64,000 nucleotides of DNA, from sequence record NC_061441.1, one strand, 5' to 3'. Position numbers and translations under genes: made by a program. Below are positions 24,345 to 59,867 of this stretch, piece after piece. Numbering within the stretch: position 1 is the stretch's first letter; every line of letters starts with the position of its first letter. The notes beneath the pieces are model-generated. The model was not told where the DNA came from and did no database searches. It worked only from the letters and a program-made list of their open reading frames with translations.

Positions 24345-24403
24345 AACTCTGCACATAATAGGATGAAATCGCCATGTACGCGCCCGTGCGCCCGTGATAC
24401 AAT
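24345..24403 (+). promoter_or_regulatory. Early promoter cassette P1
   Basis: AACTCTGCACATAATAGGATGAAATCG; TG-A-TACAAT begins 37 nt after the GG; hairpin 24413-24429. Confidence 0.75.
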
Positions 24404-24440
24404 ACACGTAGACGCTACATGTCGTAGCGCATACAACTAC

Positions 24441-24460
24441 TGCCGAGGGGCACACAATGA
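24441..24460 (+). repeat. 20-nt leader/RBS TGCCGAGGGGCACACAATGA, repeated at 24913-24932
   Basis: Identical translation-initiation regions on two adjacent genes. Confidence 0.85.
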
Positions 24461-24831
24461 CTGCTATCAAATTTGATTCTGTTTACGACATTCTTACCGA
24501 GATGGACGAATGCGCCAGAGATGTTGACTTCACCAAGACTCTTGGCTTCGACCCAATCAAAGTAGAAATTCTGCAATGCGGTCTGCAAGAAGATCTCGGC
24601 GTGTACGCGTGTTTGCCGAACGCCACAAACATTCTGATTGCCGATTCGACTGACCTGTTCTCTGAGCACCTTAAAGGTGACGGCGAAATCACAGTCTGCC
24701 GAATCTTAACGCCTAACGGCGAGATGTTCGATGAGCCAGAAGTCGAAGTCAAACAGCTTGGCACGTTCAATGATTTTGATTCAGCTTATGCTGCATGGTT
24801 AGCGGCGATTAACGAAGAAATCGACAAATAA
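24457..24831 (+). CDS. Acidic hypothetical protein
   Basis: 124 aa, D/E-rich. Confidence 0.8.
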   Translation: MTAIKFDSVYDILTEMDECARDVDFTKTLGFDPIKVEILQCGLQEDLGVYACLPNATNILIADSTDLFSEHLKGDGEITVCRILTPNGEMFDEPEVEVKQLGTFNDFDSAYAAWLAAINEEIDK

Positions 24832-24876
24832 TAGGTCAAAAGCGCTGTAGCAATGCAGCGCTATTTATCGTACTAT
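24825..24876 (+). promoter_or_regulatory. Early promoter cassette P2
   Basis: CAAATAATAGGTCAAAAGCG; TACTAT 37 nt after the GG; hairpin GCGC-AATGAT-GCGC. Confidence 0.6.
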
Positions 24877-24928
24877 GTAATCTCTGGCGCAATGATGCGC
24901 ACATACAACACTTGCCGAGGGGCACACA

Positions 24929-25630
24929 ATGAAAGCAGCAAACTTTGACGTAGCATTTAACGCGAAAGACGAAGCAACCTTAAACGCATACGCAGCGAAA
25001 ATTCTCGAAGCGCTTAACGCTCTGGGGCGTTATGACCTGAAGATCAATATCATCTTCGGCACTGACCCGTTCGGCGAACGCCCTGATTTTGTGAATGACC
25101 CGAACGGTTTTCGCGTTACACAGAACGGCGAAGAAATTTTTGATATCTACACGCCGACAGAAAAACAGATTGAAGGCGATGCGTCAGATGCTTTCATCTA
25201 CGCTTCATGGGCCGACGGCGAAGCGCCGTGGGGTAAAGACGTGTCAGACAATGACATTGCAGAAATCGCCGAACACCTGAACGCTGCAATCCCGCGTGTC
25301 GGCCGTGTGTTCAACGAATCTGATCGTCAGATGCTGCAAAAACTCGCCGACACTTTGAACGCTCGTATGGATCGTACCGATGCGCGAGTGATCGTAACGA
25401 ACGGTGCCGAAGACGATCTGATTCTTATGGTAGTTGGCTATGACGCCGAAGAAGATGAAGTCAGTGATGAATACGGCTTCTTCTTGAGCCTGCCGTACAC
25501 AGATGAAGACGGCACCGACGAGAAATACAGTCTGCACTACGCTGGCTATCCCGGCGTGAACGACCACTCATATAGCTCTGCTGACCTCGACGAAATTTCA
25601 GAAGAAATCGAGTCACTCGACCTGCTCTAA
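24929..25630 (+). CDS. Very acidic hypothetical protein
   Basis: 233 aa, D/E-rich throughout. Confidence 0.8.
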   Translation: MKAANFDVAFNAKDEATLNAYAAKILEALNALGRYDLKINIIFGTDPFGERPDFVNDPNGFRVTQNGEEIFDIYTPTEKQIEGDASDAFIYASWADGEAPWGKDVSDNDIAEIAEHLNAAIPRVGRVFNESDRQMLQKLADTLNARMDRTDARVIVTNGAEDDLILMVVGYDAEEDEVSDEYGFFLSLPYTDEDGTDEKYSLHYAGYPGVNDHSYSSADLDEISEEIESLDLL

Positions 25631-25692
25631 TCACTAACTAACTGCGGGGTTACGGCCCCGCTTACTTCACAATCTAATTGAGAGAACATGCC

Positions 25693-26307
25693 ATGAACCT
25701 TATCAATACTTTCTTCGTCAAACGCTCTTACGCTTCTCTGGCCGCAGGTAACTTTGCAATCGACGCCAAGCACGTACAAGAGCTGGTGGAATGTGAGTGT
25801 ATGATCGTACACGTAGACACCGGCCACCGTAATGCGTTCGCATTAAAGAACATCTCTATCACGCCTATCGACGAACACAACGTTCGCATTACGTTCGACC
25901 CGCTGACCGACGCACACGCGATGCCTGTGACTGTCATGCCGAAAGATCTGAAAGGTAGCATTGAAGTCTACGGCATGTATGTAGAAGACCTGAAAGACGT
26001 GCCACGTTTCAGCGTGTCGAATGACGCATCAGGCAACAATCCAAATCTGCTGTCACTTGATCTCGAAAGCCGCCAGCGCTTCGTTCAATACTTCGGTGGC
26101 ATGTGTACGCTGACTGACCTGTGCCTGACGCTGCATGAGAAAGGCATTCACGTTGTCGATATCCACAACAACGTTAAGCAGCACGATCACGGCGTTGGCG
26201 TTTTCACTCAGCGTTATCGCACCGCATTCGAACTGAACAAAGACAATGGCGTTAAGCGCCACAACGACGACTATCCTGTTTTGGCGCGCATGACCGTTTT
26301 AATGTAA
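25693..26307 (+). CDS. Hypothetical protein
   Basis: Track ORF 25678..26307; ATG 25693 after GAGAG. Confidence 0.75.
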   Translation: MNLINTFFVKRSYASLAAGNFAIDAKHVQELVECECMIVHVDTGHRNAFALKNISITPIDEHNVRITFDPLTDAHAMPVTVMPKDLKGSIEVYGMYVEDLKDVPRFSVSNDASGNNPNLLSLDLESRQRFVQYFGGMCTLTDLCLTLHEKGIHVVDIHNNVKQHDHGVGVFTQRYRTAFELNKDNGVKRHNDDYPVLARMTVLM

Positions 26308-26355
26308 ACACACCTTGCCTCGCATACCGCGGGGCTTTTCTATTTGGAGAATGCT

Positions 26356-26616
26356 ATGTACCACTATACGCGTGAAGAACTGGAAGAAATGAACTGCATC
26401 GAACTGGACCAGCTTGCAAACGAGCGCGGTCTGCTGGAAGATAAAGACGATGACGACGATCTGGACAATGACCTGCTCATCGGCATGATTCTTGACGACC
26501 AGAACGAACAGCAACTGGCAGACGAAGAAGCCGAAGATAAGCAACGCGCCGAAGATGATCGCGACCCACGTATTAATCGCCGTGACGGCCAAGACGGTTC
26601 AGACGACTATTGCTGA
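26356..26616 (+). CDS. Small acidic protein with Rho_N/HeH-like module
   Basis: LEEMNCIELDQLANERGL...DLLIGMIL. Confidence 0.65.
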   Translation: MYHYTREELEEMNCIELDQLANERGLLEDKDDDDDLDNDLLIGMILDDQNEQQLADEEAEDKQRAEDDRDPRINRRDGQDGSDDYC

Positions 26617-26673
26617 TTAAGTAAACCAAGAGGCTGCCAGCGCTGGTGGCCTCACTCACAAGAAGGAGCAATA

Positions 26674-27021
26674 ATGAAGCGCAAAGTAATATTGATAGAC
26701 ACGGCAGAGTTTCACAACCAACCCATCTCGTTTCCATCGATCATTGATTTTGACGGCATAGACACGGTGGTGTTTGTTGTGAAGTCAAATGGTGAGCACG
26801 GAGGCATTGATTATCTTGGTGCGTACTGTGCAACACAAATGACAGTTGGCTATACGAAAGCGCCTATGGCGCAGACGTTGAACATCGACGAATATGGCGT
26901 TGTGCCTCTCGAAGATGATATGAAGGCCAAGCTACTCCACACCAACCAGTACGTTGACGAAGTGCCTGAGCAACATCAAAGCATCTACAGCACGAAGACT
27001 GAAATCCTCTTCGCTGAGTAA
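26674..27021 (+). CDS. Hypothetical protein
   Basis: AAGGAG RBS, 115 aa. Confidence 0.75.
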   Translation: MKRKVILIDTAEFHNQPISFPSIIDFDGIDTVVFVVKSNGEHGGIDYLGAYCATQMTVGYTKAPMAQTLNIDEYGVVPLEDDMKAKLLHTNQYVDEVPEQHQSIYSTKTEILFAE

Positions 27022-27025
27022 CCAC

Positions 27026-27054
27026 AAGGGCTGCCATTATTGGTGGCCCTTTTT
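27026..27054 (+). terminator. Intrinsic terminator; related hairpin at 26630-26653
   Basis: AAGGGCTGCCA-TTAT-TGGTGGCCCTT-TTT. Confidence 0.8.
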
Positions 27055-27056
27055 CA

Positions 27057-27068
27057 TTTCTGTAAATA
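27057..27068 (+). promoter_or_regulatory. Variant motif TTTCTGTAAATA upstream of 27099
   Basis: Core CTGTAAATA, intergenic. Confidence 0.5.
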
Positions 27069-27098
27069 CCTCGTACATTCACTGATGCGAGAAACACA

Positions 27099-27470
27099 AT
27101 GCGCCGCTTTCTGACAGTCTTCAATGTCACTCAACAGGAGTTTGACGAACTACGCTTCTACCGCCACAAGCTCAACATCGTAACCACTTTGCGCCGCACT
27201 CACGGCATACTGCTGGTGGTACGTGAGACAGGCCGTGTGTTCAATGCCTCAACCGCCCTGTATCAACAAGCCGAAGAATACGACTTGCGCCGCGTAGACT
27301 TCACTGGTCCTGTCGAAGTGACCAAAGAGTTAGGCGAACGCTTCTCTGAACTCAAGCAGGCAATCGCAAACAACCGGCAGGATAAAAGCATCAACTACTT
27401 TGGCCGCACTCTCTCGCTCGACGAAACTCAAGAGCGATTGTACGCCACTAAACTGGAGATACTCGTATGA
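27099..27470 (+). CDS. Hypothetical protein
   Basis: 123 aa ORF. Confidence 0.7.
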   Translation: MRRFLTVFNVTQQEFDELRFYRHKLNIVTTLRRTHGILLVVRETGRVFNASTALYQQAEEYDLRRVDFTGPVEVTKELGERFSELKQAIANNRQDKSINYFGRTLSLDETQERLYATKLEILV

Positions 27471-27709
27471 CAACAATCGGTGCCTCGCTTGGTGCTCGCT
27501 TCGCTGCCACATCTTCGGAGCGTTGTTCTTCCCGCAAGAAAGCCAAGCCGCGCAACAAGACGCTGACTGCCGCAACAACTGCCGACATTCATAGCGCTGT
27601 CGAACGCCTGGCAATCAAGCTGGACACAACACGCTCGAACGTAATCGAGATCGCACTCAAAGAACTGTGCGCGAAACATGGCATAGCGATAGGCGATACC
27701 GATGAGTAA
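27467..27709 (+). CDS. Ribbon-helix-helix (CopG/Arc-like) DNA-binding protein
   Basis: TLTAATTADIHSAVERLAIKLDTTRSNVIEIALKEL fits the strand-helix-helix pattern. Confidence 0.65.
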   Translation: MTTIGASLGARFAATSSERCSSRKKAKPRNKTLTAATTADIHSAVERLAIKLDTTRSNVIEIALKELCAKHGIAIGDTDE

Positions 27710-28049
27710 CTTTATCTACTGTAGGCTGTACGGCGTTCAACATCGCCTGAATGTAGAAGGCATCGACTTCTCACAACAGACCGTATCGTATATGGTATCT
27801 GCCTCTGATGTGCTGCGCATGATGCCGCGCATTCAGGTAGGTGCGGCCTATGACACGTACACGCCATACAATGTGCTTAAGGCAGGACGTGCTGACTTCA
27901 AGATCAAAAAGATTGAGAAGATAAGCGCCGACGAGTGGCGCTATTCGTTTGTTGATTATGCTGATAGACCGTTCAACACAATTCTTAAACGGAGGTCGTA
28001 TGTCGATAGGACTAGTGAAAGTCGTCGGCTTAAAAGACAAAGCGCCTAA
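27702..28049 (+). CDS. Hypothetical protein
   Basis: 115 aa, overlapping start. Confidence 0.65.
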   Translation: MSNFIYCRLYGVQHRLNVEGIDFSQQTVSYMVSASDVLRMMPRIQVGAAYDTYTPYNVLKAGRADFKIKKIEKISADEWRYSFVDYADRPFNTILKRRSYVDRTSESRRLKRQSA

Positions 28050-28632
28050 GGGATTTGATTTAGATATCTGCCCTGTGTCGCGTGATGACGATTGGTGGTC
28101 ATTGAGTCCATTCTACCTAGGGCCTTGTCGTACACCGAGCGGCATTATGTTCCACAACATGGAGAACATGTGGCAGTATAGCAAGGTGTACGAAGAACAC
28201 CTAGTCAACTCGAATGATTTGTTTCATGGTGAAGTATCTGCCGAGTGGTGGGAATGGCATTTGAAAGGCAGTACAACCGAACAGGCGCATCGCTATCCAG
28301 CGGGGAAGGGTCGAAAGGCCCTGTTCTCGAAATGGGGCGACTTGCGCCTTTCGTACATTCCCGCACGAAAACAAATCTACGTGCCCGAATATGCGAAGCT
28401 GGTAATCCACAAGCCGAAGTTTAAACGCCTGCTTAAGGATTATAAGAAAGGTGCCAAGATAGTCCTCAGAGATTATGACACCTACGATATTCAAAAGGCC
28501 TATCCAGATTCTCGTAGTCCGTGGCTGTCGGCCATTCAAAACGAGAACGCAAAATTCGGCCATGCGTTTGTCATTGCATTGGCCTTGATGTTCCACGAAC
28601 GACCACTATGGTACAATCAATGGGTAATCTGA
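28000..28632 (+). CDS. NADAR-like (putative ADP-ribosyl hydrolase-related) protein
   Basis: LSPF...F.NMENMWQYSK resembles the NADAR LSNF...F...E...Q..K motif; GGAGG RBS before ATG 28000. Confidence 0.5.
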   Translation: MSIGLVKVVGLKDKAPKGFDLDICPVSRDDDWWSLSPFYLGPCRTPSGIMFHNMENMWQYSKVYEEHLVNSNDLFHGEVSAEWWEWHLKGSTTEQAHRYPAGKGRKALFSKWGDLRLSYIPARKQIYVPEYAKLVIHKPKFKRLLKDYKKGAKIVLRDYDTYDIQKAYPDSRSPWLSAIQNENAKFGHAFVIALALMFHERPLWYNQWVI

Positions 28633-28940
28633 CCAGATACGTAGCCTGCATTGAGTTGTCTACGCGCGAAGGAAATATGAATCTGCCGATTCTACCTCGC
28701 TGTGAACTACAAGCATTTGTTCTTGACGGACACACGCAAACTAAAGTGCCTATCAAACTTAATGTCACAAACGTCATCAATGTGATGGGCAAAACGTGTG
28801 GTAGTCTGCAATGGTTTGATTGTGTGAATCTGCTCATATGGTCATCGTTTGAGCCAGGCAGGTTCACGCTGTATATTGAACGTGCTTGCAAAACAGACGA
28901 GACTACAGACGACCAGCAATCTGCTGAACTCTGCAAATAA
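28620..28940 (+). CDS. Hypothetical protein
   Basis: Part of track ORF 28521..28940; ends ...AELCK within promoter cassette P3. Confidence 0.55.
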   Translation: MGNLTRYVACIELSTREGNMNLPILPRCELQAFVLDGHTQTKVPIKLNVTNVINVMGKTCGSLQWFDCVNLLIWSSFEPGRFTLYIERACKTDETTDDQQSAELCK

Positions 28941-28986
28941 TAGGCTGAAATAGCCATTCAGTCAGATACGCTTCCTATGCTATACT
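28927..28986 (+). promoter_or_regulatory. Early promoter cassette P3
   Basis: AACTCTGCAAATAATAGGCTGAAATAG; TG-C-TATACT at 38 nt; hairpin TGAGC-GCAGT-GCTCA. Confidence 0.8.
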
Positions 28987-29031
28987 ATACGTGAGCGCAG
29001 TGCTCATAAAACTAACGCTGAGGAGCGTATC

Positions 29032-29481
29032 ATGACTACTTTATCTATCGTTGATTTGAAGACCCCTGCGGAATTTACTACCCACCTGACTTTCGGTCAC
29101 ATGGAAGAACTGCGAGCCAGCCTTGAGCGCGCCTTGAATCGTTCTGATCTCGAGGTGTATGTTGAATGCGATTCGAACTACACACTCGAAGAAGCAAACA
29201 CCGACGGCCCTGACCAGCTGGTGGGCGATCATGAATGTATTAACGTTCACGTTCGTTATGCGGGAATGTCGTTCGATGAAGCGACGGCGAAAGGCGTGTG
29301 GGATATTTTACTGCAAACCCCGCACGAAGATAATAGCATGTCCGAGTGGTCTAACTCATACATCATGTATGTGGCCGATGAAAACCTCGACGCGCTGGAA
29401 GAAGTGACGATAGAAAACGGGAATCCTCGTATGATGGAAACTCTCGTTGATCGTATTAACTACTGGCTGCCAAAACTCTAA
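29032..29481 (+). CDS. Acidic hypothetical protein
   Basis: CTGAGGAG RBS, 149 aa. Confidence 0.8.
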   Translation: MTTLSIVDLKTPAEFTTHLTFGHMEELRASLERALNRSDLEVYVECDSNYTLEEANTDGPDQLVGDHECINVHVRYAGMSFDEATAKGVWDILLQTPHEDNSMSEWSNSYIMYVADENLDALEEVTIENGNPRMMETLVDRINYWLPKL

Positions 29482-29483
29482 GC

Positions 29484-29522
29484 GATTTGTGAAGGGCATT
29501 TGCGAGTGCCCTTTGAAAATCA
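29484..29522 (+). repeat. Intergenic interrupted hairpin, copy 1
   Basis: GATTT-GTG-AAGGGCATT-TGCG-AGTGCCCTT-TGA-AAATC; copy 2 at 29866-29906. Confidence 0.85.
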
Positions 29523-29547
29523 AACACCATAAGCTGAGGAGCTTAAC

Positions 29548-29865
29548 ATGTCATCTTCTACTACTCTGACTTTCATCTTCCCAGAAATGACCACTCTGGA
29601 AGTATCTATCGGTAATGGCATTGTGCCTGCGTATCTGGGTCTCGCAGAAAATAGAGACATAACATTCAGCGACGTTAAGGCGCTGCGTCTGATGGGTGAC
29701 TCAAACATCGTGGGTGCCATGTCACGCTTCGACCAGTCGATGTTGAATCTGCTGATCGACCGTCACATGTCACATGAGAATGTTCGCTGCCGTGACGCCA
29801 TCGACGCGGGCACCGAGCACTTCCCGTCTACTTGTCTTTATCTGAAAGTAGCGCACCACCGCTAA
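29548..29865 (+). CDS. Hypothetical protein
   Basis: CTGAGGAG RBS. Confidence 0.75.
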   Translation: MSSSTTLTFIFPEMTTLEVSIGNGIVPAYLGLAENRDITFSDVKALRLMGDSNIVGAMSRFDQSMLNLLIDRHMSHENVRCRDAIDAGTEHFPSTCLYLKVAHHR

Positions 29866-29906
29866 GATTTGTGAAGGGCATTCCAACGAGTGCCCTTTGA
29901 AAATCA
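29866..29906 (+). repeat. Intergenic interrupted hairpin, copy 2
   Basis: Same arms as copy 1, different loop (CCAACG). Confidence 0.85.
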
Positions 29907-29930
29907 CAACCTGTTCTGAGGAGAACAACA

Positions 29931-30284
29931 ATGCCAGCAACTGAACTGCCTATCGACGCTCGCGCTTTTGACGACCTGAGCAATAACAACTTCCTGCAAG
30001 TGTGCAACGCGATCTCTTTCTGCGTGTCTCGCGGTGACCTTGAGTTTCGTCATCATATCAAAGGTCGCCACATCGACGTTGCGTATCGCGCTGGTGGTAA
30101 CAACGTTTTTGGTATCAGCACCGTTCGCATCCTGATGCCGTCCGAAGTCCTGCGTGAAGATATCGTAGAAGACTTCGAGATCATTCACGGCGATGCAGTC
30201 ATTCAGATTGAACGCCAGAAAGATTCGTTCTCGACGTTGCAACGTATCGCAGGTGCAGTCGAAGCGTGTATGCCTAAACGGTGA
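29931..30284 (+). CDS. Hypothetical protein
   Basis: CTGAGGAG RBS. Confidence 0.75.
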   Translation: MPATELPIDARAFDDLSNNNFLQVCNAISFCVSRGDLEFRHHIKGRHIDVAYRAGGNNVFGISTVRILMPSEVLREDIVEDFEIIHGDAVIQIERQKDSFSTLQRIAGAVEACMPKR

Positions 30285-30349
30285 TTGTTGCTCGCAGGTT
30301 CTTACGAGAGCCTGCTGTCAACATAACCCCATAAGCTGAGGAGCTTAAC

Positions 30350-30757
30350 ATGAAACAATATCCACAACGCGGCCGTGTGTACACGCTGAAAGAAATCGAA
30401 AACGAACTGGAACTGCGTGACAGTCCGTTTCTGCGTTTCTGCCCGCAGAAAGTTCGTCTGCTGGGCGAGAAAGAAGCAGGCATTCAGGTAATCCAGCAAT
30501 CGCATATCGCCAACCTGTCTGACGTTGAAGGTTGGGCAGACACCGAGTGGTCATATGTGCGCGAGACCGAAGAGTGGATTCCGCTTTTCCGTGCAGTTGA
30601 CGACGCTGAGATTGAGGCGCTCTGCGTTATCGAGCCTGACACGTCTGAGTTTCGTTCATGTGATGGTATGTTCATCTACCCGAAAGGCGCGGTGTGCAAG
30701 CAGTACACGCCTTATGACAAAAAGATTCACGGCGAACTGCTGGTGGCAGTAGAATAA
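30350..30757 (+). CDS. Hypothetical protein
   Basis: Leader CCATAAGCTGAGGAGCTTAACATG identical to that of 29548. Confidence 0.8.
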   Translation: MKQYPQRGRVYTLKEIENELELRDSPFLRFCPQKVRLLGEKEAGIQVIQQSHIANLSDVEGWADTEWSYVRETEEWIPLFRAVDDAEIEALCVIEPDTSEFRSCDGMFIYPKGAVCKQYTPYDKKIHGELLVAVE

Positions 30758-30816
30758 CAAAAACAGGGACGCTCACGAAGGTGTGCGCGTCCCATTTCTC
30801 ATTTAAGGACAAATCT

Positions 30817-31326
30817 ATGATTCCCGAAATCACCCACATCTTCAACGTAATGATGACCAGCCTGAAAGACGTTCGCAGTGTTGAGCGTCTGCATCTCATT
30901 AACAAGAGTGCCGTGCGCTTTCATCTCAAAGGCAAACATTTCGACGTGCGTGGTCAGTACCCGCTGTTCTCTGTCCACGAAATCGAAGGCTCCACTATGG
31001 CTTACTCACGGGCAGCCAAAGAGATTGAATCCCAACTCAATGGTGAACCTATCGAAGAAGTCGAAGATAACACGCATGACGCAGCACTGGACGATGTGCT
31101 GATCGCTCATGTTGACAACATGGCCGAAGATCGTGTTCGCGCATACAACGAAGAATGCGGCGGCCCTGACTTAGACCCAATCAATATGCAGCGCACTTGG
31201 CTAAAGACCCACTTCCTGCATATAGGCCACAACACGCCTGACCTGTTAGAGACTGTGCTCTACATGGAAGGGAAAGAACGGAGAGAAGAACTGGCGAAAG
31301 CCATTAAGGGGGTATTATGTTTTTAG
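30817..31326 (+). CDS. Hypothetical protein
   Basis: AAGGA RBS before ATG 30817. Confidence 0.75.
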   Translation: MIPEITHIFNVMMTSLKDVRSVERLHLINKSAVRFHLKGKHFDVRGQYPLFSVHEIEGSTMAYSRAAKEIESQLNGEPIEEVEDNTHDAALDDVLIAHVDNMAEDRVRAYNEECGGPDLDPINMQRTWLKTHFLHIGHNTPDLLETVLYMEGKERREELAKAIKGVLCF

Positions 31327-31598
31327 CGTGGTTTAAATATCGGCGCGCCAAGAAACGTAACGAGTTCATGGCAGAAGTCGTATCTGCAATAGCAAAACTG
31401 AATCAGCGTGATCGCGACCTGTTGTGTCGTGCAATCAGTTTGCCTGCAACTGCTGACGGTCTGTTTGCGTTAACTAACATGCCGCGTAAAGAGCTGGCTG
31501 CACAATGCAATCAGTATTACGCCCATGTGTCGGGCAATAAATGGAACGTGTACGATGCGTTCTGCAAAGTCATTCATACCGCAAGAAAAGGAAAGTAA
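31317..31598 (+). CDS. Hypothetical protein
   Basis: 93 aa, overlapping start. Confidence 0.7.
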   Translation: MFLAWFKYRRAKKRNEFMAEVVSAIAKLNQRDRDLLCRAISLPATADGLFALTNMPRKELAAQCNQYYAHVSGNKWNVYDAFCKVIHTARKGK

Positions 31599-31600
31599 CC

Positions 31601-32041
31601 ATGAACGAAATAGATATTCTGATCCGTGAGTTCTCTCGGGCGTATCTGAAAGCAGAAGCATCACCTTTCGGTAACGTCGCATATCACGTACAAGACCAAA
31701 CAGACGGCCTGAAAAACATTGCACTCTATCTGCGTTTTCGTTCTGGTCCGCAAGCTCTTTGGCAGCGACCGTGTTTGGTGCTCGCCACAATTGATGTTCG
31801 TGACTCGGGTAAAGGTACATTCAGTGAGTTGCTTCGTCGCACAAAAGACCTGTGCCGCGAACGTGACTGGATTCTTCAAATTGAAAACGTCCTGACACCG
31901 CAGTTCAGGAAGTTCTTGCAGCGTGGTGGCTTCAAGCCGTTCGGTGTAGACAAAGACGTACCGTTCGGCAGTCTCTATTGGTTCTACGACGAGACAATCC
32001 CTCAGCAATGTGCGATGTACCCAGAGAGGGCACACCCATGA
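31601..32041 (+). CDS. GNAT-like acetyltransferase
   Basis: LATIDVRDSGKGTFSELL (motif A-like), LQIENV..PQF..FLQRGGF (motif B-like). Confidence 0.6.
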   Translation: MNEIDILIREFSRAYLKAEASPFGNVAYHVQDQTDGLKNIALYLRFRSGPQALWQRPCLVLATIDVRDSGKGTFSELLRRTKDLCRERDWILQIENVLTPQFRKFLQRGGFKPFGVDKDVPFGSLYWFYDETIPQQCAMYPERAHP

Positions 32042-32478
32042 TTAACTGGCCTGTAGTTCTCTGTGGATTCTTTCCACTGATCGCTTGCTATATAACAATT
32101 CCGTGGTTCCGTGCTGCTGTTAACCGTAGACTGACGTTCAAGCCGTTCGACTATGATGCGCTTGACGAGATACTGACTGACGGCATGCCTGAGAAGTTGA
32201 CGATCTCCTGTCTACAGGCTACGTACCGCGTCAACTCACCTGCGCATTCGCATATTGATATTTACGCACACAAGGACAATGTTGCTGTTGTTCGAATGTT
32301 GGTGGACCCTAACTTCCCGATAGCACGTTGTTTCCATGACGTGTTGAACGCGAACATAAACGCATTCGCTGTGAAGTCACATAGACCACCGACACTCATA
32401 ATCAATCAGTGTCTCTATCCTGTTGTTGAGTATGAGTACGACGATACGTACCTGTTGATTTACCTTAAACATAAGTAA
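32038..32478 (+). CDS. Membrane-anchored hypothetical protein
   Basis: N-terminal hydrophobic stretch. Confidence 0.65.
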   Translation: MINWPVVLCGFFPLIACYITIPWFRAAVNRRLTFKPFDYDALDEILTDGMPEKLTISCLQATYRVNSPAHSHIDIYAHKDNVAVVRMLVDPNFPIARCFHDVLNANINAFAVKSHRPPTLIINQCLYPVVEYEYDDTYLLIYLKHK

Positions 32479-32487
32479 GGGACTATC

Positions 32488-32787
32488 ATGGTCACCCAAC
32501 AACAACTATCAGAGTTTGCGCGACTGCCTACACTGCACCGTAAAGTGATACTTCGCAGTATGCAGGTTGAGATGTTGGGTGCCTTGCCTGAGCTTACTGA
32601 CATTGTGCGTGAAATGCTTTATCGTGCAATTGTCGTGGATGTGGCTCAAGCAGAAATGGCACTCCTTGCTGCCCGTCAAATGTGTGACAACAAAGACGTC
32701 CGTAGAAGTATTGACGATCTGCTGCAATTCGTTGCTCGTCTTCATGACGTTGCAACTGATAACTTTCTTTCTGGAGATTTACTATGA
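32488..32787 (+). CDS. Hypothetical protein
   Basis: 99 aa, AAGGGA RBS. Confidence 0.7.
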   Translation: MVTQQQLSEFARLPTLHRKVILRSMQVEMLGALPELTDIVREMLYRAIVVDVAQAEMALLAARQMCDNKDVRRSIDDLLQFVARLHDVATDNFLSGDLL

Positions 32788-33848
32788 ATAAGACCGTTGG
32801 CCTGATGATTGATGAAGACGTAATGAACTGGCTGGACATGCTGCTTGCGGGCGAACTGAGCAACGTCTTAGGTGCGTTGAACAATATCGTGTATGCCCGC
32901 CGTCAGGAGCTGTCTGTTGAACGTCTGACCGAAGACGAAGACATTGGTGCGCTCTCTCATAAAGAGCTGGAGATCATTCTGCGCTACGCCGCTCCTAATC
33001 ATGAGTACGATACGACGGTGCTGTCGAACGAACAACTGCTTCGTCTGGCGATGGATGCACAAGGGATCATCTCGTACACACTGCCATGCCATTGCTCTCC
33101 TATCATGGTTAAACGTGCTTTCGCTAACGGCAACGTGTGCTCACTGCTTGGCAGTTTTTCGAATCGTGCTGATATCGTCATGGCTGTACATCACTGGGAA
33201 TGTGGTCTGTCCAACATCTCGCTCGACGGTGTGACTGGTAACGACGAACGCCCAGACGAACAAGGCATGTACCTGTGCTACGATGAGCACAAGCAAGTTC
33301 GTTATGGCCGACTGTTCAAGAACGCCAACGACGGCTGGACATTCAGCGAGTATTATTCTGCTGGTGGATCTACTACGTGGCTTGAAGCGAGTCCAAACAA
33401 TGCGCTTGATGGTGACGACCTGCCGATCAGCCTGCTGACTAACTGGGTATTCGTTGTTCCAGATCGTTCGCCGTCTATTCTCAAACCTGCTGAGGGATTC
33501 AAGCGTCTGTCCGACACACAACGCATCTTCCTGTATCTGCGTAGCCTGAGTCCTCACGTTAAAGCTGAGATCGTCGCACACTTCGACGGCGTTCTGGACA
33601 ATCGATCATTCACCTCTGTCGATCAGATTGGTCGCCTGACTGAAAAAGACTGGCGCGATGCTGCGATTGCTATCGGTGAAGAAGAAAGTGGCCAAGAAGG
33701 TCCTCACTACTGGGATGATCGTAGTGCGTGGGCTTGCTTCGTCGCTGTGCTCAACTCTCTGTGCTTCGACATGGACACACGCGACTTCCAACCGCAGTAT
33801 GAGTACCAGGCCAACGACGACACTATGGAAGAAGACAACAATGGCTAA
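32784..33848 (+). CDS. Multi-domain hypothetical protein
   Basis: 354 aa; IGALSHKELEIIL...NEQLLRLAM is a possible HeH-like segment. Confidence 0.75.
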   Translation: MNKTVGLMIDEDVMNWLDMLLAGELSNVLGALNNIVYARRQELSVERLTEDEDIGALSHKELEIILRYAAPNHEYDTTVLSNEQLLRLAMDAQGIISYTLPCHCSPIMVKRAFANGNVCSLLGSFSNRADIVMAVHHWECGLSNISLDGVTGNDERPDEQGMYLCYDEHKQVRYGRLFKNANDGWTFSEYYSAGGSTTWLEASPNNALDGDDLPISLLTNWVFVVPDRSPSILKPAEGFKRLSDTQRIFLYLRSLSPHVKAEIVAHFDGVLDNRSFTSVDQIGRLTEKDWRDAAIAIGEEESGQEGPHYWDDRSAWACFVAVLNSLCFDMDTRDFQPQYEYQANDDTMEEDNNG

Positions 33849-34374
33849 ATCACTCGGCGTATACATGACTTACATTCTGCGTCACAAGCCGCAGGATATC
33901 GGAATCGCAATGGACACCCAGGGTTGGGTGTCTGTTCTGGACTTCTTGCAGAAAGCAAAGTATGTCAAACAGGTCACTCTCGAAATGCTGATTGCAGAAG
34001 TTGAGGCGGACGAGAAAGGCCGTTTCGAGTTCAACTCTAACCGCTCCAAGATTCGTTGTGTGCAAGGCCATTCGGTTGAGAACGTTATTCTGCATCTTGA
34101 ACCGTTCACTGACCTTGCGCCTTTGTATCACGGTACGGCAGATAAGAACGTGGCATCAATCATGCACGAAGGTATCACGAAGCGGAAACGCAAACACGTC
34201 CACATCAGCCGTGAAATAGAAACAGCCGAGAACGTTGGTCGTCGTCACGGTGCACCTGTTGTGTTTCAGATTGATACACAGGCAATGATCACTCACGGCT
34301 ATAAGTTCTACCGAGCCGAGAATGGAGTCATCCTGACCGATCACGTACCGTCCAGATATATCAAGTTGGTGTGA
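33841..34374 (+). CDS. kptA: RNA 2'-phosphotransferase (Tpt1/KptA)
   Basis: ILRH, GRF, IRCVQGHS (Arg-His-Arg-Arg tetrad), LYHGT, HVHIS, GRRHG. Confidence 0.92.
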   Translation: MAKSLGVYMTYILRHKPQDIGIAMDTQGWVSVLDFLQKAKYVKQVTLEMLIAEVEADEKGRFEFNSNRSKIRCVQGHSVENVILHLEPFTDLAPLYHGTADKNVASIMHEGITKRKRKHVHISREIETAENVGRRHGAPVVFQIDTQAMITHGYKFYRAENGVILTDHVPSRYIKLV

Positions 34375-34375
34375 T

Positions 34376-34777
34376 ATGGAAAAGACGTACATGACACATT
34401 GGGGATCGCGCTACGTGCGGTCCTCCTCCGGCAAGTGGTATTCAGTTCATGGACGTGAAGGTACTTGGGTAACTAATCGCTACGGTACCTCATTCTATCG
34501 TAGCGGTTCAGAGGTATGGCGGGACATAACTCTTGCCGACCGAGAGTCATTAGAACGCGAATTACTCAAACGCACCCGCAATGACTTCAAGGAAAATAAG
34601 CTCAAGTATAACCACTGGGGCAAAGTGGTGTTGACCATAGCTCGCCAGTCAGAAGATGAAAAGAATGAGCACACGGCAGAACTTGCTGTGATGCTTGAAG
34701 CGCTTAGACAGACTTTCTATGGACAGAAGGTACAGCAACTAAGCACAATTCTGGATGAAATAGCCGTTAAAGACTAA
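34376..34777 (+). CDS. Hypothetical protein
   Basis: 133 aa. Confidence 0.7.
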   Translation: MEKTYMTHWGSRYVRSSSGKWYSVHGREGTWVTNRYGTSFYRSGSEVWRDITLADRESLERELLKRTRNDFKENKLKYNHWGKVVLTIARQSEDEKNEHTAELAVMLEALRQTFYGQKVQQLSTILDEIAVKD

Positions 34778-34795
34778 GCTCGTTTGTGATATAAT
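34748..34795 (+). promoter_or_regulatory. Early promoter cassette P4
   Basis: ATTCTGGATGAAATAG; TG-A-TATAAT 37 nt after the GG. Confidence 0.7.
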
Positions 34796-34838
34796 AGAGA
34801 TCAACGCTAGACACTCGTTTAGCTACTTACATGAGGAT

Positions 34839-35180
34839 ATGTATATGAAAAAGTCAAAAGTTAAAGCAGAAGTTGTTGCACCTACTATCGAAGGTCGTTC
34901 ATTCACGTTATATAACGCCTCGCCTGTTCCCGAATTGTCCGTAACACCGTTTGCAGGCCGTGATGCGTTTTTACCTCTACTGCGTAAAGTTCAGGATGCT
35001 GCTCAACTGGAGCGTATTCGTGGTATGTCCTGTTGTCCGTACTGCCGTGAAACAATGATGTTAGGCGAGTACACCAAAGACAACTGGCTGTGGTCATATT
35101 CATATCAGCACATGATCGAACACCACAACGTAACGCCGTCCGCAGAATTTATTGCATACGTCGAAGCCGCTTCTAAATAA
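34839..35180 (+). CDS. Hypothetical protein with CxxC/His cluster
   Basis: RGMSCCPYC...W.W...HMIEHHNV.P..EF. Confidence 0.75.
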   Translation: MYMKKSKVKAEVVAPTIEGRSFTLYNASPVPELSVTPFAGRDAFLPLLRKVQDAAQLERIRGMSCCPYCRETMMLGEYTKDNWLWSYSYQHMIEHHNVTPSAEFIAYVEAASK

Positions 35181-35200
35181 TCCGAACTGCACCATAGGAC

Positions 35201-36727
35201 ATGAACATGAAAAAGATTAAACACACTTTCCGCCTGACCGATTTGGTACACATCGCAAAACTTCCTGCAGGTATGTCCAAATTCCACGAAGGCTCGGATG
35301 CTATTGTTGTCGGCCGCAACGAAGATAGCGACCAATATATTCTGCACGTTAAAAACGTTGGTGAGCTTTCGTGGTACGAAGGTAAATCACTGACGTTGAT
35401 CAGTCACAACAACGGCGAACTGCTTGACCAGTGGGAAGCAGGTGACTACGGTCGTGATAAGAAAAAGAAACGCAAGATCCCAAAAGAACTGCGTAACTTC
35501 ACGGCTATCTTGCCTGTGACCTGCAACGCCGATTGTTCGTTCTGCCCTGAGAAAGAAATGGAGCAGAAAGCCAACCAGAAAGAATGGCAAGATGGTTTGA
35601 TTGCAGAGATCAAACGCATGTACAAGAAAACGAAGTTCGACCACGTATCAATCAGCGGCGGCGAACCGACGTTGCGTACAAAGTTCCTGTTCGAAACGAT
35701 CGACCGTATTCAGAAAGAAACGCCGATCAAGAAAGTCGGTCTGACTTCTAACGGTCAGTTCCTTGAGAAACCAAACAGTACGTTCGACTTCTTAGACCGT
35801 AACACTACGCCTGAGATGACCAGCAAGCTGTCGCATCTGAATATCAGTATGCACTCGTTCAACCGCGACCTTGCGAACAAGATCATGGGCGTGAACTACA
35901 AACAGACTCTGGAAGATTTAGTTCGCTTCCGCCGTCAGCTCGGCCGTGACGTTAGCTTCCACATTAACTTCGTGATCAATGACCAGACTGGTTCGATTAC
36001 GGAAGAGTTCAAGAGGGCCGCAAACTTCATGCGCGCCAATCCATTTATCGACGTTGTGTTCCGTGTTGATTACAACGACGTTGAACTGTCGAAAGCTCTG
36101 CGTGACTACGCTATGGAATATGAAGCGTGGCAGGAAGCAAGTCGCATCGCTGTGGCTACTCGCAAGAAGTGCAAAGTGAAAGAGCCTCGCGCACCTCACA
36201 TTGTTCAGAAGTTTGATCGCTTCTTCGGCGGCCAGAATCTCGATGACGTTGAAAGCGCTTGGACTACAGGTTGCCCGTCGTGCTTCACTCATGCGTCGAA
36301 CCCTATCAATAACAGCCGCGCATATCTGAAAGCGTCTTCCTACGAACCTAATGAAGACGAAGCGGAGTACACTGAGCTGGTGTATCACATGGACGGTGCT
36401 CTGTATTGGGACTGGACTCGTAATGACCCTGTACCAGCTCCGCGTAGCAAGCGTTTTGACTTCGAGATGAAAGAAGAAGAAGACAAGGCGTGGGAACATG
36501 GTTCTGTGGCCGAAGCGATTAACGCGAATCGCTGTTCATTTGGACCTGCTGCACCGCATCACTGCTCTTACGATTCTACTGGCACAACGGTCGCACCGAA
36601 AGCTGCGAAGAAACCTAAGAAAGTGACACCCGCCAAGAAAACGAAGAAGGTGGGTGGAAAAGTTTCGAGCGTTCCTGGTGCTGCTCCTGGTGTTTGTGGC
36701 TACGGCAATAGTCGTTGTGGCTATTAA
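35201..36727 (+). CDS. Radical SAM protein with N-terminal accessory domain and Cys-aromatic tail
   Basis: CNADCSFC (CxxxCxxC), SISGGEPT, TSNG, NISMH; GCPSC. Confidence 0.88.
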   Translation: MNMKKIKHTFRLTDLVHIAKLPAGMSKFHEGSDAIVVGRNEDSDQYILHVKNVGELSWYEGKSLTLISHNNGELLDQWEAGDYGRDKKKKRKIPKELRNFTAILPVTCNADCSFCPEKEMEQKANQKEWQDGLIAEIKRMYKKTKFDHVSISGGEPTLRTKFLFETIDRIQKETPIKKVGLTSNGQFLEKPNSTFDFLDRNTTPEMTSKLSHLNISMHSFNRDLANKIMGVNYKQTLEDLVRFRRQLGRDVSFHINFVINDQTGSITEEFKRAANFMRANPFIDVVFRVDYNDVELSKALRDYAMEYEAWQEASRIAVATRKKCKVKEPRAPHIVQKFDRFFGGQNLDDVESAWTTGCPSCFTHASNPINNSRAYLKASSYEPNEDEAEYTELVYHMDGALYWDWTRNDPVPAPRSKRFDFEMKEEEDKAWEHGSVAEAINANRCSFGPAAPHHCSYDSTGTTVAPKAAKKPKKVTPAKKTKKVGGKVSSVPGAAPGVCGYGNSRCGY

Positions 36728-43212: not shown

Positions 43213-43264
43213 AGATATGAGCGTTATCGCTCGTATAACTAGACTGACACAAGGAAATAAGACA

Positions 43265-46590: not shown

Positions 46591-46635
46591 CTGGTCAGAA
46601 TAGCGCTTCTTCGTGGGGCGCTTCTATGATATAAT
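46577..46635 (+). promoter_or_regulatory. Early promoter cassette P6
   Basis: AACTCTGCAAGTAACTGGTCAGAATAG; TG-A-TATAAT at 37 nt; hairpin AGAGC-AATATC-GCTCT. Confidence 0.8.
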
Positions 46636-46701
46636 CATAGATAGAGCAATATCGCTCTCAACGTTTTATCAACCATACGTTTAAACACGGGATTGTCATT
46701 T

Positions 46702-48037: not shown

Positions 48038-48305
48038 AGGTAATTTCCTTGAGCGCTTGAAGTCCGGCGAAACTTTTTACATGCACATTAGCGGTAAGAA
48101 GAAGGGCCAACCACGTCAAGGTGTTTCGTTAGGCCATGACGCTCGATACAAAGACCTGATGATGGCTATAGGTGGTGTGGCATTCACTCACGGGTATAAG
48201 AACGTTCAGGTATCATTTAGTCGCAACATCATGGCAGACGCTGATGGTGTTGTGGTGTTTCGTGTTAAACAATCAATCACTGTTAAAGAAGAAAGGACGT
48301 ACTAA
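48024..48305 (+). CDS. Hypothetical protein
   Basis: 93 aa. Confidence 0.7.
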   Translation: MKTNKGNFLERLKSGETFYMHISGKKKGQPRQGVSLGHDARYKDLMMAIGGVAFTHGYKNVQVSFSRNIMADADGVVVFRVKQSITVKEERTY

Positions 48306-50803: not shown

Positions 50804-50834
50804 AACGGGAGACCTTAACTGGTTTCCCGTTTTT
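50804..50834 (+). terminator. Intrinsic terminator
   Basis: AACGGGAGACC-TTAACT-GGTTTCCCGTT-TTT. Confidence 0.8.
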
Positions 50835-50866
50835 CATTTCTGCGCAAATTTTTAAGGACTACCACA

Positions 50867-51808: not shown

Positions 51809-51852
51809 TAGGCTGAAATAGACGTATACGAACCACGTGCCTGTGATATAAT
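51801..51852 (+). promoter_or_regulatory. Early promoter cassette P7
   Basis: GCAAATAATAGGCTGAAATAG identical to 28933-28953; TG-A-TATAAT at 36 nt. Confidence 0.8.
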
Positions 51853-55638: not shown

Positions 55639-55646
55639 GGTGACCT

Positions 55647-55946: not shown

Positions 55947-55950
55947 GCAT

Positions 55951-55999
55951 AAAACTGGCTAAAATCGTGGTATCAATTTAAGCCCGACTGTGATATACT
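55951..55999 (+). promoter_or_regulatory. Early promoter cassette P8
   Basis: AAAACTGGCTAAAATCGTGG; TG-A-TATACT at 37 nt; hairpin 56001-56023. Confidence 0.8.
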
Positions 56000-56049
56000 A
56001 AAAGCGTAGCGATGCTGCGCTTTTTCACTTATGTCTGAGGAGACAACAA

Positions 56050-57879: not shown

Positions 57880-58075
57880 TCAAGATGATGTGAATGGTAG
57901 AATTGCTGCGGCCGACGAGCAACGTCAGAAAGAGCGTGAATCACGCTATGATGATTGGTCGATTGACGACCTGCGTGATGCTCTGCTTGAGAATGGTCTT
58001 GTATTTGACGGTGAAGACGTAGACGACTACAGCCGCGCAGACTGTATCAGACTGCTACTGGCTGATGGCTTCTAA
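57872..58075 (+). CDS. Small acidic protein with Rho_N/HeH-like module
   Basis: YDDWSIDDLRDALLENGL...SRADCIRLLL. Confidence 0.7.
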   Translation: MSSQDDVNGRIAAADEQRQKERESRYDDWSIDDLRDALLENGLVFDGEDVDDYSRADCIRLLLADGF

Positions 58076-58080
58076 GCACA

Positions 58081-58128
58081 AAACTGGACAAAATCGTGGT
58101 TGTCTCAAATAGCTGCCTGAACTATACT
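58081..58128 (+). promoter_or_regulatory. Early promoter cassette P9
   Basis: AAACTGGACAAAATCGTGG; TTGTCT-17-TATACT; 37 nt from the GG. Confidence 0.8.
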
Positions 58129-58176
58129 ATATAGACAGCGAGACAACTATCTCTCTGTATGCCTTTGTTATTGCTT

Positions 58177-58325
58177 GACCGTGCGTTTTTCGATTTTCCC
58201 GGACGCACGGTCCTTTTTAAAGTGGACTTCGCTGAGGTTCCTTTAAAAAGGGTTCGATACCCTTTGAGCGCGTCGGGCTTTACGCGGTTTCCGCCTTACG
58301 TGCTCTCATGCTAAACCGCAAAGGA
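58177..58325 (+). ncRNA. Candidate structured 5' leader/ncRNA (four hairpins plus alternative pairing)
   Basis: Stems 58177-58212, 58214-58249, 58247-58265 (TTCGATA loop), 58266-58305; GCGGTTT/AAACCGC next to the RBS. Confidence 0.5.
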
Positions 58326-58332
58326 AATTGAA

Positions 58333-59091
58333 ATGCCTACTACTTCACGTCCTAAGACAGAAGACAAGTTTTCCCGTGCTCGCGCCGCCAAAAACTCACC
58401 TGAGCGTCAGGCCGCGGCCACCAAGAAAACGCCACGAGGTCCTTCCTCGGTTCGTCCTAAATCAACGGCAGATCGTGAGCCTAAGATTCGTGACGAGGAG
58501 CGTGTGTACAATCTCGTACATGCAATTCTGAGCGCGTGGAAAGCTGATGTGGGACATGCCGAAAACACGGCAGCCTCTGCTGGTATCATCAAAGTGTCTC
58601 GCCGTAAAATTGAAGGCTCCTTGCGTGACCTCAAGAATACGCGCTTCACTAAAATCCCGACGCTCATTAATGACGTCCTCGTGTATAACGAAGTCTGCAA
58701 TGAGTTCGGGCAGTGGGTGTACGTTGAGCATGACAGTCCTGATTGGATTTTCGTGCGACTGCCGGATAACAGCACACCTGTGATTCGTGCTGATATCAGC
58801 TACGACAAGACAGGCAAAACTGCCGCATCTGTTTCAACTTCAAGCGAAGTTTTGCTGGAAGACTTGGACGAAGAAGAGGAAGATGAAATCCCTGAGAACG
58901 TCGAATATGACGACGAGGACGATTCTGATGTGAATGAAGAAGAGGACGACGAGGAGGAGTACCAGTCCTGGTCCCTCAGCCAACTTCAAAACTTTGCTAA
59001 GGCCGAAGGTTACATCGGCATCAAAGATGAAGGTTGGAACGACCGCCAGACGCTTCTTGCTCGCATCCTGAATAAGGGAGCAATCAAATGA
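58333..59091 (+). CDS. Hypothetical protein: basic N-terminus, acidic linker, C-terminal Rho_N/HeH-like module
   Basis: YQSWSLSQLQNFAKAEGY...RQTLLARIL; AAGGA RBS. Confidence 0.8.
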   Translation: MPTTSRPKTEDKFSRARAAKNSPERQAAATKKTPRGPSSVRPKSTADREPKIRDEERVYNLVHAILSAWKADVGHAENTAASAGIIKVSRRKIEGSLRDLKNTRFTKIPTLINDVLVYNEVCNEFGQWVYVEHDSPDWIFVRLPDNSTPVIRADISYDKTGKTAASVSTSSEVLLEDLDEEEEDEIPENVEYDDEDDSDVNEEEDDEEEYQSWSLSQLQNFAKAEGYIGIKDEGWNDRQTLLARILNKGAIK

Positions 59092-59537
59092 GTCTGACTA
59101 TTCGCTCTGCTGCCGAAACTGCTGCAATGATCATTGAAAACGTCACTCTCTACTCTCAAGAGAAGGGGCACGAATATCCGCTGCCGCGCTTTAAGATGCC
59201 CGACAATGCGATACGTCGAATCTCTGGTCATGCTCGCGTTCTGCCTGAAAGCTATATTGAGCAACTGTCTATCGAGCTGCAACAAATCGACTGGATGATG
59301 CTGCGGTATAACGCCGGCGAGTTCTTGTTCATGCACTACGATATCCCAAAGAACTGGACGCGACTGAGTGCGAAGCGTGTGGTCCCTAATGACGACCCTG
59401 CCGCTGAGTACGATACGTGGACGCTTCCTGAACTTCAGGGATTCGCTCAACGTAACGACTTTTTGCAGCCTGACGAAGAGGGCTTCAACGATAGAGCGTC
59501 ACTGATTCGCGCTATCATGCTAGGCGAGACCCATTGA
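59088..59537 (+). CDS. Hypothetical protein with C-terminal Rho_N/HeH-like module
   Basis: YDTWTLPELQGFAQRNDF...RASLIRAIM. Confidence 0.8.
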   Translation: MSLTIRSAAETAAMIIENVTLYSQEKGHEYPLPRFKMPDNAIRRISGHARVLPESYIEQLSIELQQIDWMMLRYNAGEFLFMHYDIPKNWTRLSAKRVVPNDDPAAEYDTWTLPELQGFAQRNDFLQPDEEGFNDRASLIRAIMLGETH

Positions 59538-59555
59538 GTAGGGGAAGATAATCGA

Positions 59556-59702
59556 ATGAACAAATCTAAGCGGGACGCAGAAGACCCCGACATTGCTAAA
59601 ATGCGCAAGCGTCTGGTAGATGCGAAAATCATCAAGCCAGAAGCTGCTGTGAAGCTGTCAAGCAATGACATTGTGAAGCTGTACACTTACTACAGCGTAT
59701 AA
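59556..59702 (+). CDS. 48-aa protein (MNKSKRDAED...YYSV), absent from the ORF track
   Basis: GGGGA RBS; KMRKRLVDAKII..EAAVKLSSNDIVKLY resembles the C-terminus of 59868..61457. Confidence 0.7.
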   Translation: MNKSKRDAEDPDIAKMRKRLVDAKIIKPEAAVKLSSNDIVKLYTYYSV

Positions 59703-59755
59703 GCAATAATGAGCAGGCAGTGAACGTGCTGCCTGCTATCTGCGAAGTATGCAGA

Positions 59756-59804
59756 AAACTGGACAAAATCGTGGTTGTTATCTGAAAGCAACCTATGCTA
59801 TACT
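59756..59804 (+). promoter_or_regulatory. Early promoter cassette P10
   Basis: AAAACTGGACAAAATCGTGG; TTGTTA-18-TATACT; hairpin GACGC-AATATC-GCGTC. Confidence 0.8.
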
Positions 59805-59867
59805 TAATGCAGACGCAATATCGCGTCGGCAAGCAAATCAAACAACAAATACTGAGGAGTATTAATC

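Follow-up and report, generated by a model that had tools for sequence, protein, structure and literature searches.

The accessory-gene region of the jumbo phage Erwinia phage pEa_SNUABM_16 (NC_061441.1, 266,838 bp, Alexandravirus) carries a family of repeated cassettes, ten of which lie in the 64,000-nucleotide stretch of DNA analyzed here (the window; genome 186001–250000, with 100% identity of window 24000–36000 to genome 210000–222000). Each cassette, P1 to P10 in order along the + strand, combines an upstream box, a weak -35 hexamer, a -10 element and, in nine copies, a short hairpin at the predicted RNA start, and each appears to head a small accessory-gene operon on the + strand. With a probability of roughly 0.7, these ten sites are strong promoters for the RNA polymerase of the host carrying its primary sigma factor, acting right after infection. 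This promoter reading is well supported by the sequence and by comparison among relatives; a second reading, in which the cassettes are modules of recombination, is partly supported, at one hot spot only. The known kinds of element behind such cassettes are phage early promoter families and cassettes resembling the promoter-stem-loop repeats (PeSLs); no promoter class is described for Alexandravirus or the wider jumbo-phage group in the literature searched.

The ten boxes begin with GG at 24361, 24834, 28943, 34753, 43169, 46593, 51811, 55957, 58086 and 59761, exactly where an earlier note on this DNA had placed them, and the distances that it gave from GG to the -10 hexamer (37, 37, 38, 37, 38, 37, 36, 37, 37 and 38 nt, respectively) are likewise borne out. 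The box pattern that it proposed, GGNNNAAATMG, fits less completely: seven of the ten copies match exactly, but those at 24834, 43169 and 46593 depart from it by one base. Two further matches, at 23986 on the + strand and 14346 on the - strand, are both without a -10 element and bring the total to nine, where 2.75 are expected; the former, inside gp253, was rejected as a cassette and taken for a chance match. Aligned on GG, the ten copies yield the consensus gAAcT..GCA.AtAA.tGG..aAAAT.G..gTt, followed by a variable stretch and then cCTgTGaTAtAnT. The extension upstream of the box, AACTCTGCA.., is found as reported at 24361, 28943, 43169 and 46593, and the unrelated genes gp263 and gp299 do both end in AELCK*.

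A two-block weight matrix (box plus -10, spacing 35–39) was scanned over the whole genome (267 kb) on both strands, with 20 shuffled windows as the null. The composite signal far exceeds chance: the ten sites score 31–48 bits, or 18–45 bits when each is left out of the matrix in turn, and the best of the shuffled windows reaches 22. The site at 24834 is the weakest (18.4 bits left out); because this value lies inside the range of the shuffles, its membership rests on the orthologues that carry it. The genome-wide motif scan, which the earlier note had suggested, returns twelve members and then background. All twelve are on the + strand, from genome 210361 to 262334, and no stand-alone box is found on either strand. 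Two of them are degenerate copies beyond the window, at genome 258252 (26.9 bits), upstream of the gene for the topoisomerase II large subunit, and at genome 262334 (16.7 bits), upstream of gp340. A generic scan for sigma-70 -35/-10 pairs was tried as a detector and rejected, as it matches only P9 and P10 and is not enriched over shuffles.

The extended -10 sequence TGnTAYAMT is present in eight of the ten cassettes, the TG being absent in P2 (TCGTACTAT) and P9 (AACTATACT). Eight of the 11 occurrences of TGNTAYAMT in the window carry the box at a fixed distance, with about two such sites expected by chance; genome-wide there are 29 sites (about 8 expected), ten of them cassettes and the others scattered. 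The box is present at nearly all of the non-random strong extended -10 sites. The -35 element had been called poorly conserved, which holds for the hexamer as a whole (2–4 of 6 matches to TTGACA) but not for the T at -35, which is nearly invariant. Because the box is fixed relative to the -35, with this T at GG+14, the variation of 36–38 nt is that of an ordinary 16–18 bp spacer. The cassettes themselves are intergenic or at gene ends, ahead of + strand operons, within a long run of small and mostly hypothetical + strand genes (gp253 to gp325 in the annotation).

Comparison with the same region of eight Alexandravirus genomes (70–95% identity) reveals 10–11 cassettes in each, in the same order and at orthologous positions. 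Across the nine genomes and the ten orthologous groups, the mean pairwise difference is 0–0.1 at GCA (-59 to -57), A at -55, A at -53, GG (-49/-48), AAAT (-44 to -41), G at -39, T at -35, TG (-15/-14) and positions 1, 2, 4 and 6 of the -10 hexamer. The near-invariant upstream positions fall within -65 to -33. The difference rises, on the other hand, to 0.3–0.45 in the spacer from -32 to -16, upstream of -66 and downstream of about +11. Because the spacer diverges as fast as the flanks while the elements are near-invariant, the pattern is one of purifying selection and not of recent copying. The same phylogenetic footprint recurs at each of ten independent loci, and within Alexandravirus the family is an old one, passed on by vertical descent and kept by purifying selection. 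The earlier claim of a repeated promoter and hairpin cassette family is sustained by the extended -10 consensus, by the position before operons and by this selection at ten loci across at least ten relatives.

Farther afield, cassettes 8–10 are kept in a distant relative (L018, with 58% identity in gp325) and in a metagenomic genome. A strict pattern (box, T at -35, extended -10, one spacing) was also scanned against 2.9 million viral contigs and a genome collection of 185,579 species. The former gave 24 stretches, all on Alexandravirus-like contigs of 261–268 kb, and the latter gave three mis-binned phage contigs plus one unrelated site, about what chance would supply. An origin of the box in a host genome was rejected, as no enterobacterial match occurs in the genome collection. 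Three short contigs binned into a 'Raoultibacter sp.' metagenome-assembled genome (L046, L047 and L049) are mis-binned fragments of an Alexandravirus-like phage, about 76% identical to the window and with cassettes conserved.

A hairpin just after the predicted start had been seen in at least seven copies. Upon folding 40 nt from 2 bases before the predicted start, nine of the ten cassettes are found to have one, P7 being the copy without. The z-scores from P1 to P10 are -1.85, -0.62, -2.78, -2.36, -2.14, -2.82, -0.01, -1.88, -1.91 and -3.98 (mean about -2), and in the nine copies the core hairpin starts between about 2 nt upstream and 6 nt downstream of the predicted start. The loop AATATC does occur twice, in the cassettes at 46593 and 59761. 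Here, too, the orthologues are informative: variation is 0.13 in the stem columns, 0.285 in the loops and 0.32 in the flanks. In pEa_SNUABM_2 (S2) the P10 stem GACGC/GCGTC has become GGTGC/GCACC through two compensatory pairs, and in Alexandra the stem of the P4 hairpin is replaced with pairing retained. A hairpin within the spacer was rejected as a general feature, being significant only at P2 and P6. ARAGORN found no tRNA, and Rfam gave no family over the whole window at the gathering threshold nor for the P9 leader at E <= 5.

Two of the start hairpins call for separate description. That of P8 is the only one with a T run after it; right after the -10 (56000–56026), it lies between an A run and a T run in the manner of a bidirectional intrinsic terminator, and it is conserved in all relatives. 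It may be a stop for read-through from the upstream operon or an attenuator of P8 itself. P9, in turn, heads a short unit at 58135–58222 made up of the 5' hairpin, about 18 unpaired bases, an 11-pair terminator stem reaching to about 58212 and a T run. The 91-nt fold of this unit has a z-score of -3.56, its terminator stem displays compensatory changes among relatives, and the distant relative L018, which lacks the downstream genes, has retained the unit. We regard it as a candidate small RNA, about 85 nt in length. Next to it, before gp322, a non-coding leader of about 110 nt (58225–58332) is almost invariant in nine genomes that differ by 20–25% elsewhere. It features three hairpins, one with a loop like that of a tRNA T arm (GGGTTCGATACCC), and yields neither an Rfam nor a tRNA match. 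A small open reading frame at 58159–58314 was rejected as a gene, as it is not conserved in relatives.

How would such a promoter be recognized? We infer that the polymerase reads chiefly the extended -10 TGnTAYAMT, aided by the weak -35 with its T at -35 and its 16–18 bp spacer. A good -35 is dispensable for promoters with an extended -10. The upstream block from -60 to -38, consisting of two A-tracts with the invariant GG between them, lies where the C-terminal domain of the polymerase alpha subunit (alpha-CTD) sits on UP elements, so that the suggestion in the earlier note that the box may bind alpha-CTD holds as regards position. The UP element of rrnB P1-type promoters is the alpha-CTD site and extends from -59 to -38. 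The block in the cassettes has the same position and extent, with the A-tract at -44 to -41 matching the proximal subsite and the A/T-rich bases from -57 to -52 within the distal one. The likeness is incomplete, however, as the UP consensus has a T-tract where the cassettes have GG (-49/-48), and as the cassettes conserve GCA (-59 to -57) and G at -39.

T4 early promoters, which are UP/-35/TGn/-10 promoters with additional conserved positions (PMC2988021), are alike, on this reading, in being a repeated, strong host-sigma-70 family in a large lytic phage; the genome here, too, has no gene annotated as an RNA polymerase. Both have the TGn, a near-consensus -10, extra conserved positions and A-rich sequence at about -42 and -52 (PMC2988021). 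The -35 of the T4 promoters is excellent, whereas that of the cassettes is poor, far from the near-consensus hexamer of the T4-type class and with only its T conserved. The cassettes differ from them further in the invariant G/C of the upstream block and in the stem-loop at the transcript start.

The transcripts would begin with a short G+C-rich stem-loop at or within a few bases of the start, for which the most economical role would be protection against 5'-end-dependent decay. This reading is preferred because of established work on stem-loops in E. coli. The ompA-type 5'-terminal stabilizing stem-loops, reportedly described by Emory, Bouvet and Belasco in 1992, resemble those of the cassettes in that a short, stable hairpin stands at the 5' end and leaves few bases there unpaired, if any, but the 5' ends of the cassettes are predicted ones and two of the copies are terminator-like. 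The spacer hairpins of P2 and P6, that of P2 being terminator-like, would serve to end transcription arriving from upstream.

Several points weigh against host sigma-70 early promoters of this kind. The -35 hexamers are poor, and P2 and P9 are without TG at -15/-14. The G/C positions of the upstream block (GCA at -59 to -57, GG at -49/-48, G at -39) lie outside the UP consensus. The start sites and the timing are predictions, and the phage appears to encode a divergent sigma-70-family protein of its own. Finally, a purely stabilizing role does not suit every copy, given the T run after the P8 hairpin and the complete terminator downstream of that of P9.

Because the invariant G/C positions of the box are foreign to the UP consensus, a dedicated factor stays a live rival, if a distinctly less probable one. 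The box would be the operator of a dedicated protein, which might be a repressor for early shutoff, a factor of the host, or a phage activator that arrives with the virion or is made very early; alpha-CTD by itself would then, with the same modest likelihood, not account for the -35-poor promoters, which would depend on that protein or be switched by it. The weak -35 hexamers, the fixed position of the box relative to them and the restriction of the motif to one phage genus are as such a protein would have it. Yet the box has neither dyad symmetry nor a second half-site, it never stands alone in the genome, its A-tracts fall at the alpha-CTD subsites, and an extended -10 tolerates a poor -35. 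In the genome collection, the strict pattern occurs in no enterobacterial genome, so that no host regulon of such geometry is evident, and no candidate regulator was identified.

Slightly less likely still is a regulatory start hairpin, serving as an attenuator or terminator for upstream read-through or as a nut/put-like antitermination signal against terminators within the operons. The P8 hairpin between its A run and T run, and P9 with its full terminator, are readily understood in these terms; terminator-like hairpins do lie within cassette-driven operons, at 26317, 27026, 42150 and 50804, and four cassettes have in common a GNGC stem with an AAT-rich loop. However, eight of the nine hairpins are without a T run, no Rfam family is matched, and both stem and loop sequences vary between cassettes, as would not be expected for a single specific binding partner. 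Two of the strong terminator hairpins within the operons (27026–27062 and 50804–50842) are followed by the same TTTCATTTCTG.

The earlier note had also likened the cassettes to PeSLs and expected them to shuffle genes. PeSLs consist of an A/T-rich region, a sigma-70 promoter and a stem-loop terminator just upstream of that promoter, followed by a Shine-Dalgarno sequence and ATG; they are over-represented at indels and give rise to mini-circles (PMC2839356, PMC4122927). The cassettes resemble them (Arbiol 2010; Comeau 2014) as repeated A/T-rich sequences with a sigma-70-like promoter, followed by Shine-Dalgarno and ATG, among hyperplastic small genes: ten copies lie in 35 kb of accessory genes, where more than half of the junctions have indels among relatives. 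They differ in that the PeSL stem-loop is a terminator upstream of the promoter, whereas the hairpin of the cassettes comes after the start in nine of ten copies; furthermore, the sequences are unrelated and breakpoints are not enriched at the cassettes. That the cassettes are primarily recombination modules of this type, moving promoter-gene units and possibly doing so via excised circles, is unlikely.

What shuffling there is can be seen best at P1/P2, where units have been gained, lost and re-ordered through crossovers in a shared 5' untranslated region (UTR). With protein families A to G assigned by BLASTP, the order is P1-E-P2-A-B in S16 and S22, P1-E-P2-A-P-C-D-B in S2, P1-E-P2-A-F-C-D-B in S35 (with no cassette detected before C), P1-A-G-P2-C-D-B in Alexandra, P1-A-P2-C-D-B in AD1, S33 and S3, and P1-A-B in S17. 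A deletion at P1/P2 relative to S16 has its edges at 24460 and 24899 with an overlap of 34–36 nt in the shared 5' UTR, and in S2 and Alexandra it is P2-type cassettes that the downstream half of P1 matches. As in PeSL mini-circles, the P1/P2 crossovers fall between the -10 and the ATG. Elsewhere, P9 and P10 share 24 identical bases, and the AELCK* end of gp299 is confined to S16 and S22, other relatives having ..SK*, ..SE* or ..DK*; a P1/P3-type cassette seems to have donated it as a short conversion patch.

Against this stands the behavior of the remaining cassettes. Taking as an indel edge any junction that differs in size by 100 nt or more in one or more of eight relatives, 8 of 10 cassette junctions and 33 of 62 other junctions have one (odds ratio 3.5, Fisher p = 0.17), and significance is not reached despite the wider tolerance afforded by the long gaps at cassettes. 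All cassettes are free of indel and replacement breaks in the three closest relatives, S18, S28 and S22 (98%, 98% and 94% identity); the breaks in S18 lie at 47991–48289 and 58951–59593, and S22 has three, none at a cassette. The association of indel breakpoints with cassettes that the earlier note had looked to is thus clear at P1/P2 but neither significant overall nor seen in the closest relatives. Groups 3–10 are strictly positional orthologues. Concerted evolution among the cassettes was rejected, the best match being almost always the orthologue. Nor does a stem-loop directly precede the promoter; in P2 and P6 it lies within the spacer.

Many deletions are instead flanked by repeats of 20–36 nt at the ribosome-binding regions of tightly packed genes. 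Whole-gene deletions in relatives with direct repeats of this length are seen at 24460/24899, 26651/27020, 29034/29522, 34853/35196 and 41057/41389, the repeats sitting at 5' UTRs and ribosome-binding regions, as with CATAAGCTGAGGAGCTTAACATG before gp265 and gp267. Crossovers seem usually to fall at such repeats and not at the promoter boxes. PeSL-like shuffling therefore stands for the P1/P2 modules and the AELCK* patch but not elsewhere, where inheritance is vertical and indels are not significantly enriched at cassettes. Modular exchange clearly has a hot spot at P1/P2, and the region as a whole is hyperplastic, but it is not driven chiefly by the cassettes; ectopic recombination between them has occurred as a by-product of repeated homology and is not the main source of gene turnover.

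It is likewise improbable, though a more radical proposal, that the block from -60 to -38 is a dock for a dedicated factor or a phage-modified alpha subunit that bypasses recognition of the -35 and that the 5' stem-loops are antitermination or processing signals of all early operons, the two together making up a genus-specific early system.

A second motif bears on the remaining rival and on the timing. The sequence (A)ATCTGTAAATA, the CTGTAAATA class, has 29 copies genome-wide, in gene orientation on both strands, most of them 20–60 nt before the start codons of structural and replication genes and one before gp245. Copies in the window lie at 2552, 13985, 20236 and 27060 on the + strand and at 7096 on the - strand; the TTTCATTTCTG at 27060 runs into a CTGTAAATA motif, and another such motif immediately precedes the degenerate cassette at genome 262334. 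The motif resembles the T4 late promoter -10, TATAAATA, and is probably the promoter class of a phage sigma factor. This late-like motif accounts for other gene classes and so supports the cassettes as a separate class, one whose confinement to the accessory region fits early expression. The sigma-like protein gp245 (14026–15063) matches PHROG 17569, 'RNA polymerase sigma factor', and has no Pfam sigma domain match; a divergent sigma-70-family protein is encoded in this phage group (PMC7412058). That gp245 reads the cassettes, which would then be middle or late promoters and not host sigma-70 ones, is very unlikely in spite of that protein, since the -10 region is a textbook extended -10 of the primary sigma factor, gp245 has no detectable Pfam sigma-70 regions, the cassettes occur only in the accessory-gene region and a phage sigma would more plausibly use (A)ATCTGTAAATA, which stands ahead of the sigma gene as well as of structural and replication genes.

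The individual cassettes, all on the + strand, depart from one another in detail. P1 (24345–24434) has its -35 T at 24375, TG at 24395, the -10 TACAAT at 24398–24403, a predicted +1 at about 24410 and the 5' hairpin at 24408–24434; it heads gp254 and has orthologues in eight relatives. P2 (24818–24903), the weakest copy, is a composite of terminator and promoter: its spacer hairpin (24841–24862; z = -3.0) is terminator-like and displays four different covarying pair types among relatives, and it is followed by the -10 TACTAT at 24871–24876 and the 5' hairpin at 24885–24903 ahead of gp255. In P3 (28927–29007) the upstream part codes for the ..AELCK* end of gp263, and TG and the -10 TATACT (28981–28986), after an 18-bp spacer, precede a predicted +1 at about 28993 and a hairpin at 28991–29007, before gp264. 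P4 (34737–34823) is overlapped by the last codons of gp275, which pass through the box to 34777; the -10 TATAAT is at 34790–34795, the predicted +1 at about 34802 and the hairpin at 34806–34823, heading gp276. The box of P5 (43153–43234) overlaps the stop codon of gp292, a UvdE-type endonuclease gene ending at 43179, with the -10 TACACT at 43207–43212, a predicted +1 at about 43219 and the hairpin at 43217–43234 before gp293.

P6 (46577–46658) codes in its upstream part for the AELCK* end of gp299; its spacer hairpin has a z-score of -3.9, the -10 TATAAT is at 46630–46635, the predicted +1 at about 46642 and the start hairpin at 46643–46658, and it heads gp300. P7 (51795–51859), with a 16-bp spacer, has the -10 TATAAT at 51847–51852 and a predicted +1 at about 51859, and heads gp310 with no stable fold at its start. 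P8 (55941–56020) has the -10 TATACT at 55994–55999 and its terminator-like hairpin at 56004–56020, and heads gp317. P9, together with its short transcription unit, spans 58070–58222, with the -10 TATACT at 58123–58128, a predicted +1 at about 58135 and the 5' hairpin at 58135–58158. P10 (59745–59830), with the -35 TTGTTA, TG and the -10 TATACT at 59799–59804, a predicted +1 at about 59811 and the hairpin at 59809–59830, heads gp325.

Searches of Pfam and PHROGs were uninformative on what the genes at the heads of the operons do. The P10-driven gp325 (60780–61330) has acidic repeats of GAAGA/GACGA-type codons, with many internal and paralogous BLAST matches. Products encoded elsewhere in cassette-driven operons include a DksA/TraR-type zinc-finger protein (38056–38319), possibly a polymerase-binding regulator, a radical SAM enzyme (35207–36727), the UvdE-type endonuclease (42199–43179) and a Tpt1 RNA 2'-phosphotransferase (33841–34374).

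If the promoter reading is true, the cassettes would be compact, strong and well-delimited promoter parts for enterobacterial hosts. The box itself offers a natural experiment on upstream promoter recognition, with the same G/C at ten loci and a UP-like element beside a weak -35. The popular idea of promoter cassettes as the vehicles of gene exchange is tempered by this region, in which the very high gene turnover seems to proceed mostly via short repeats at ribosome-binding sites and gene junctions. For the phage, the cassettes map the likely early operons, with twelve predicted start sites genome-wide, ten of them in the window, and together with the CTGTAAATA motif they may provide a first outline of its temporal programme.

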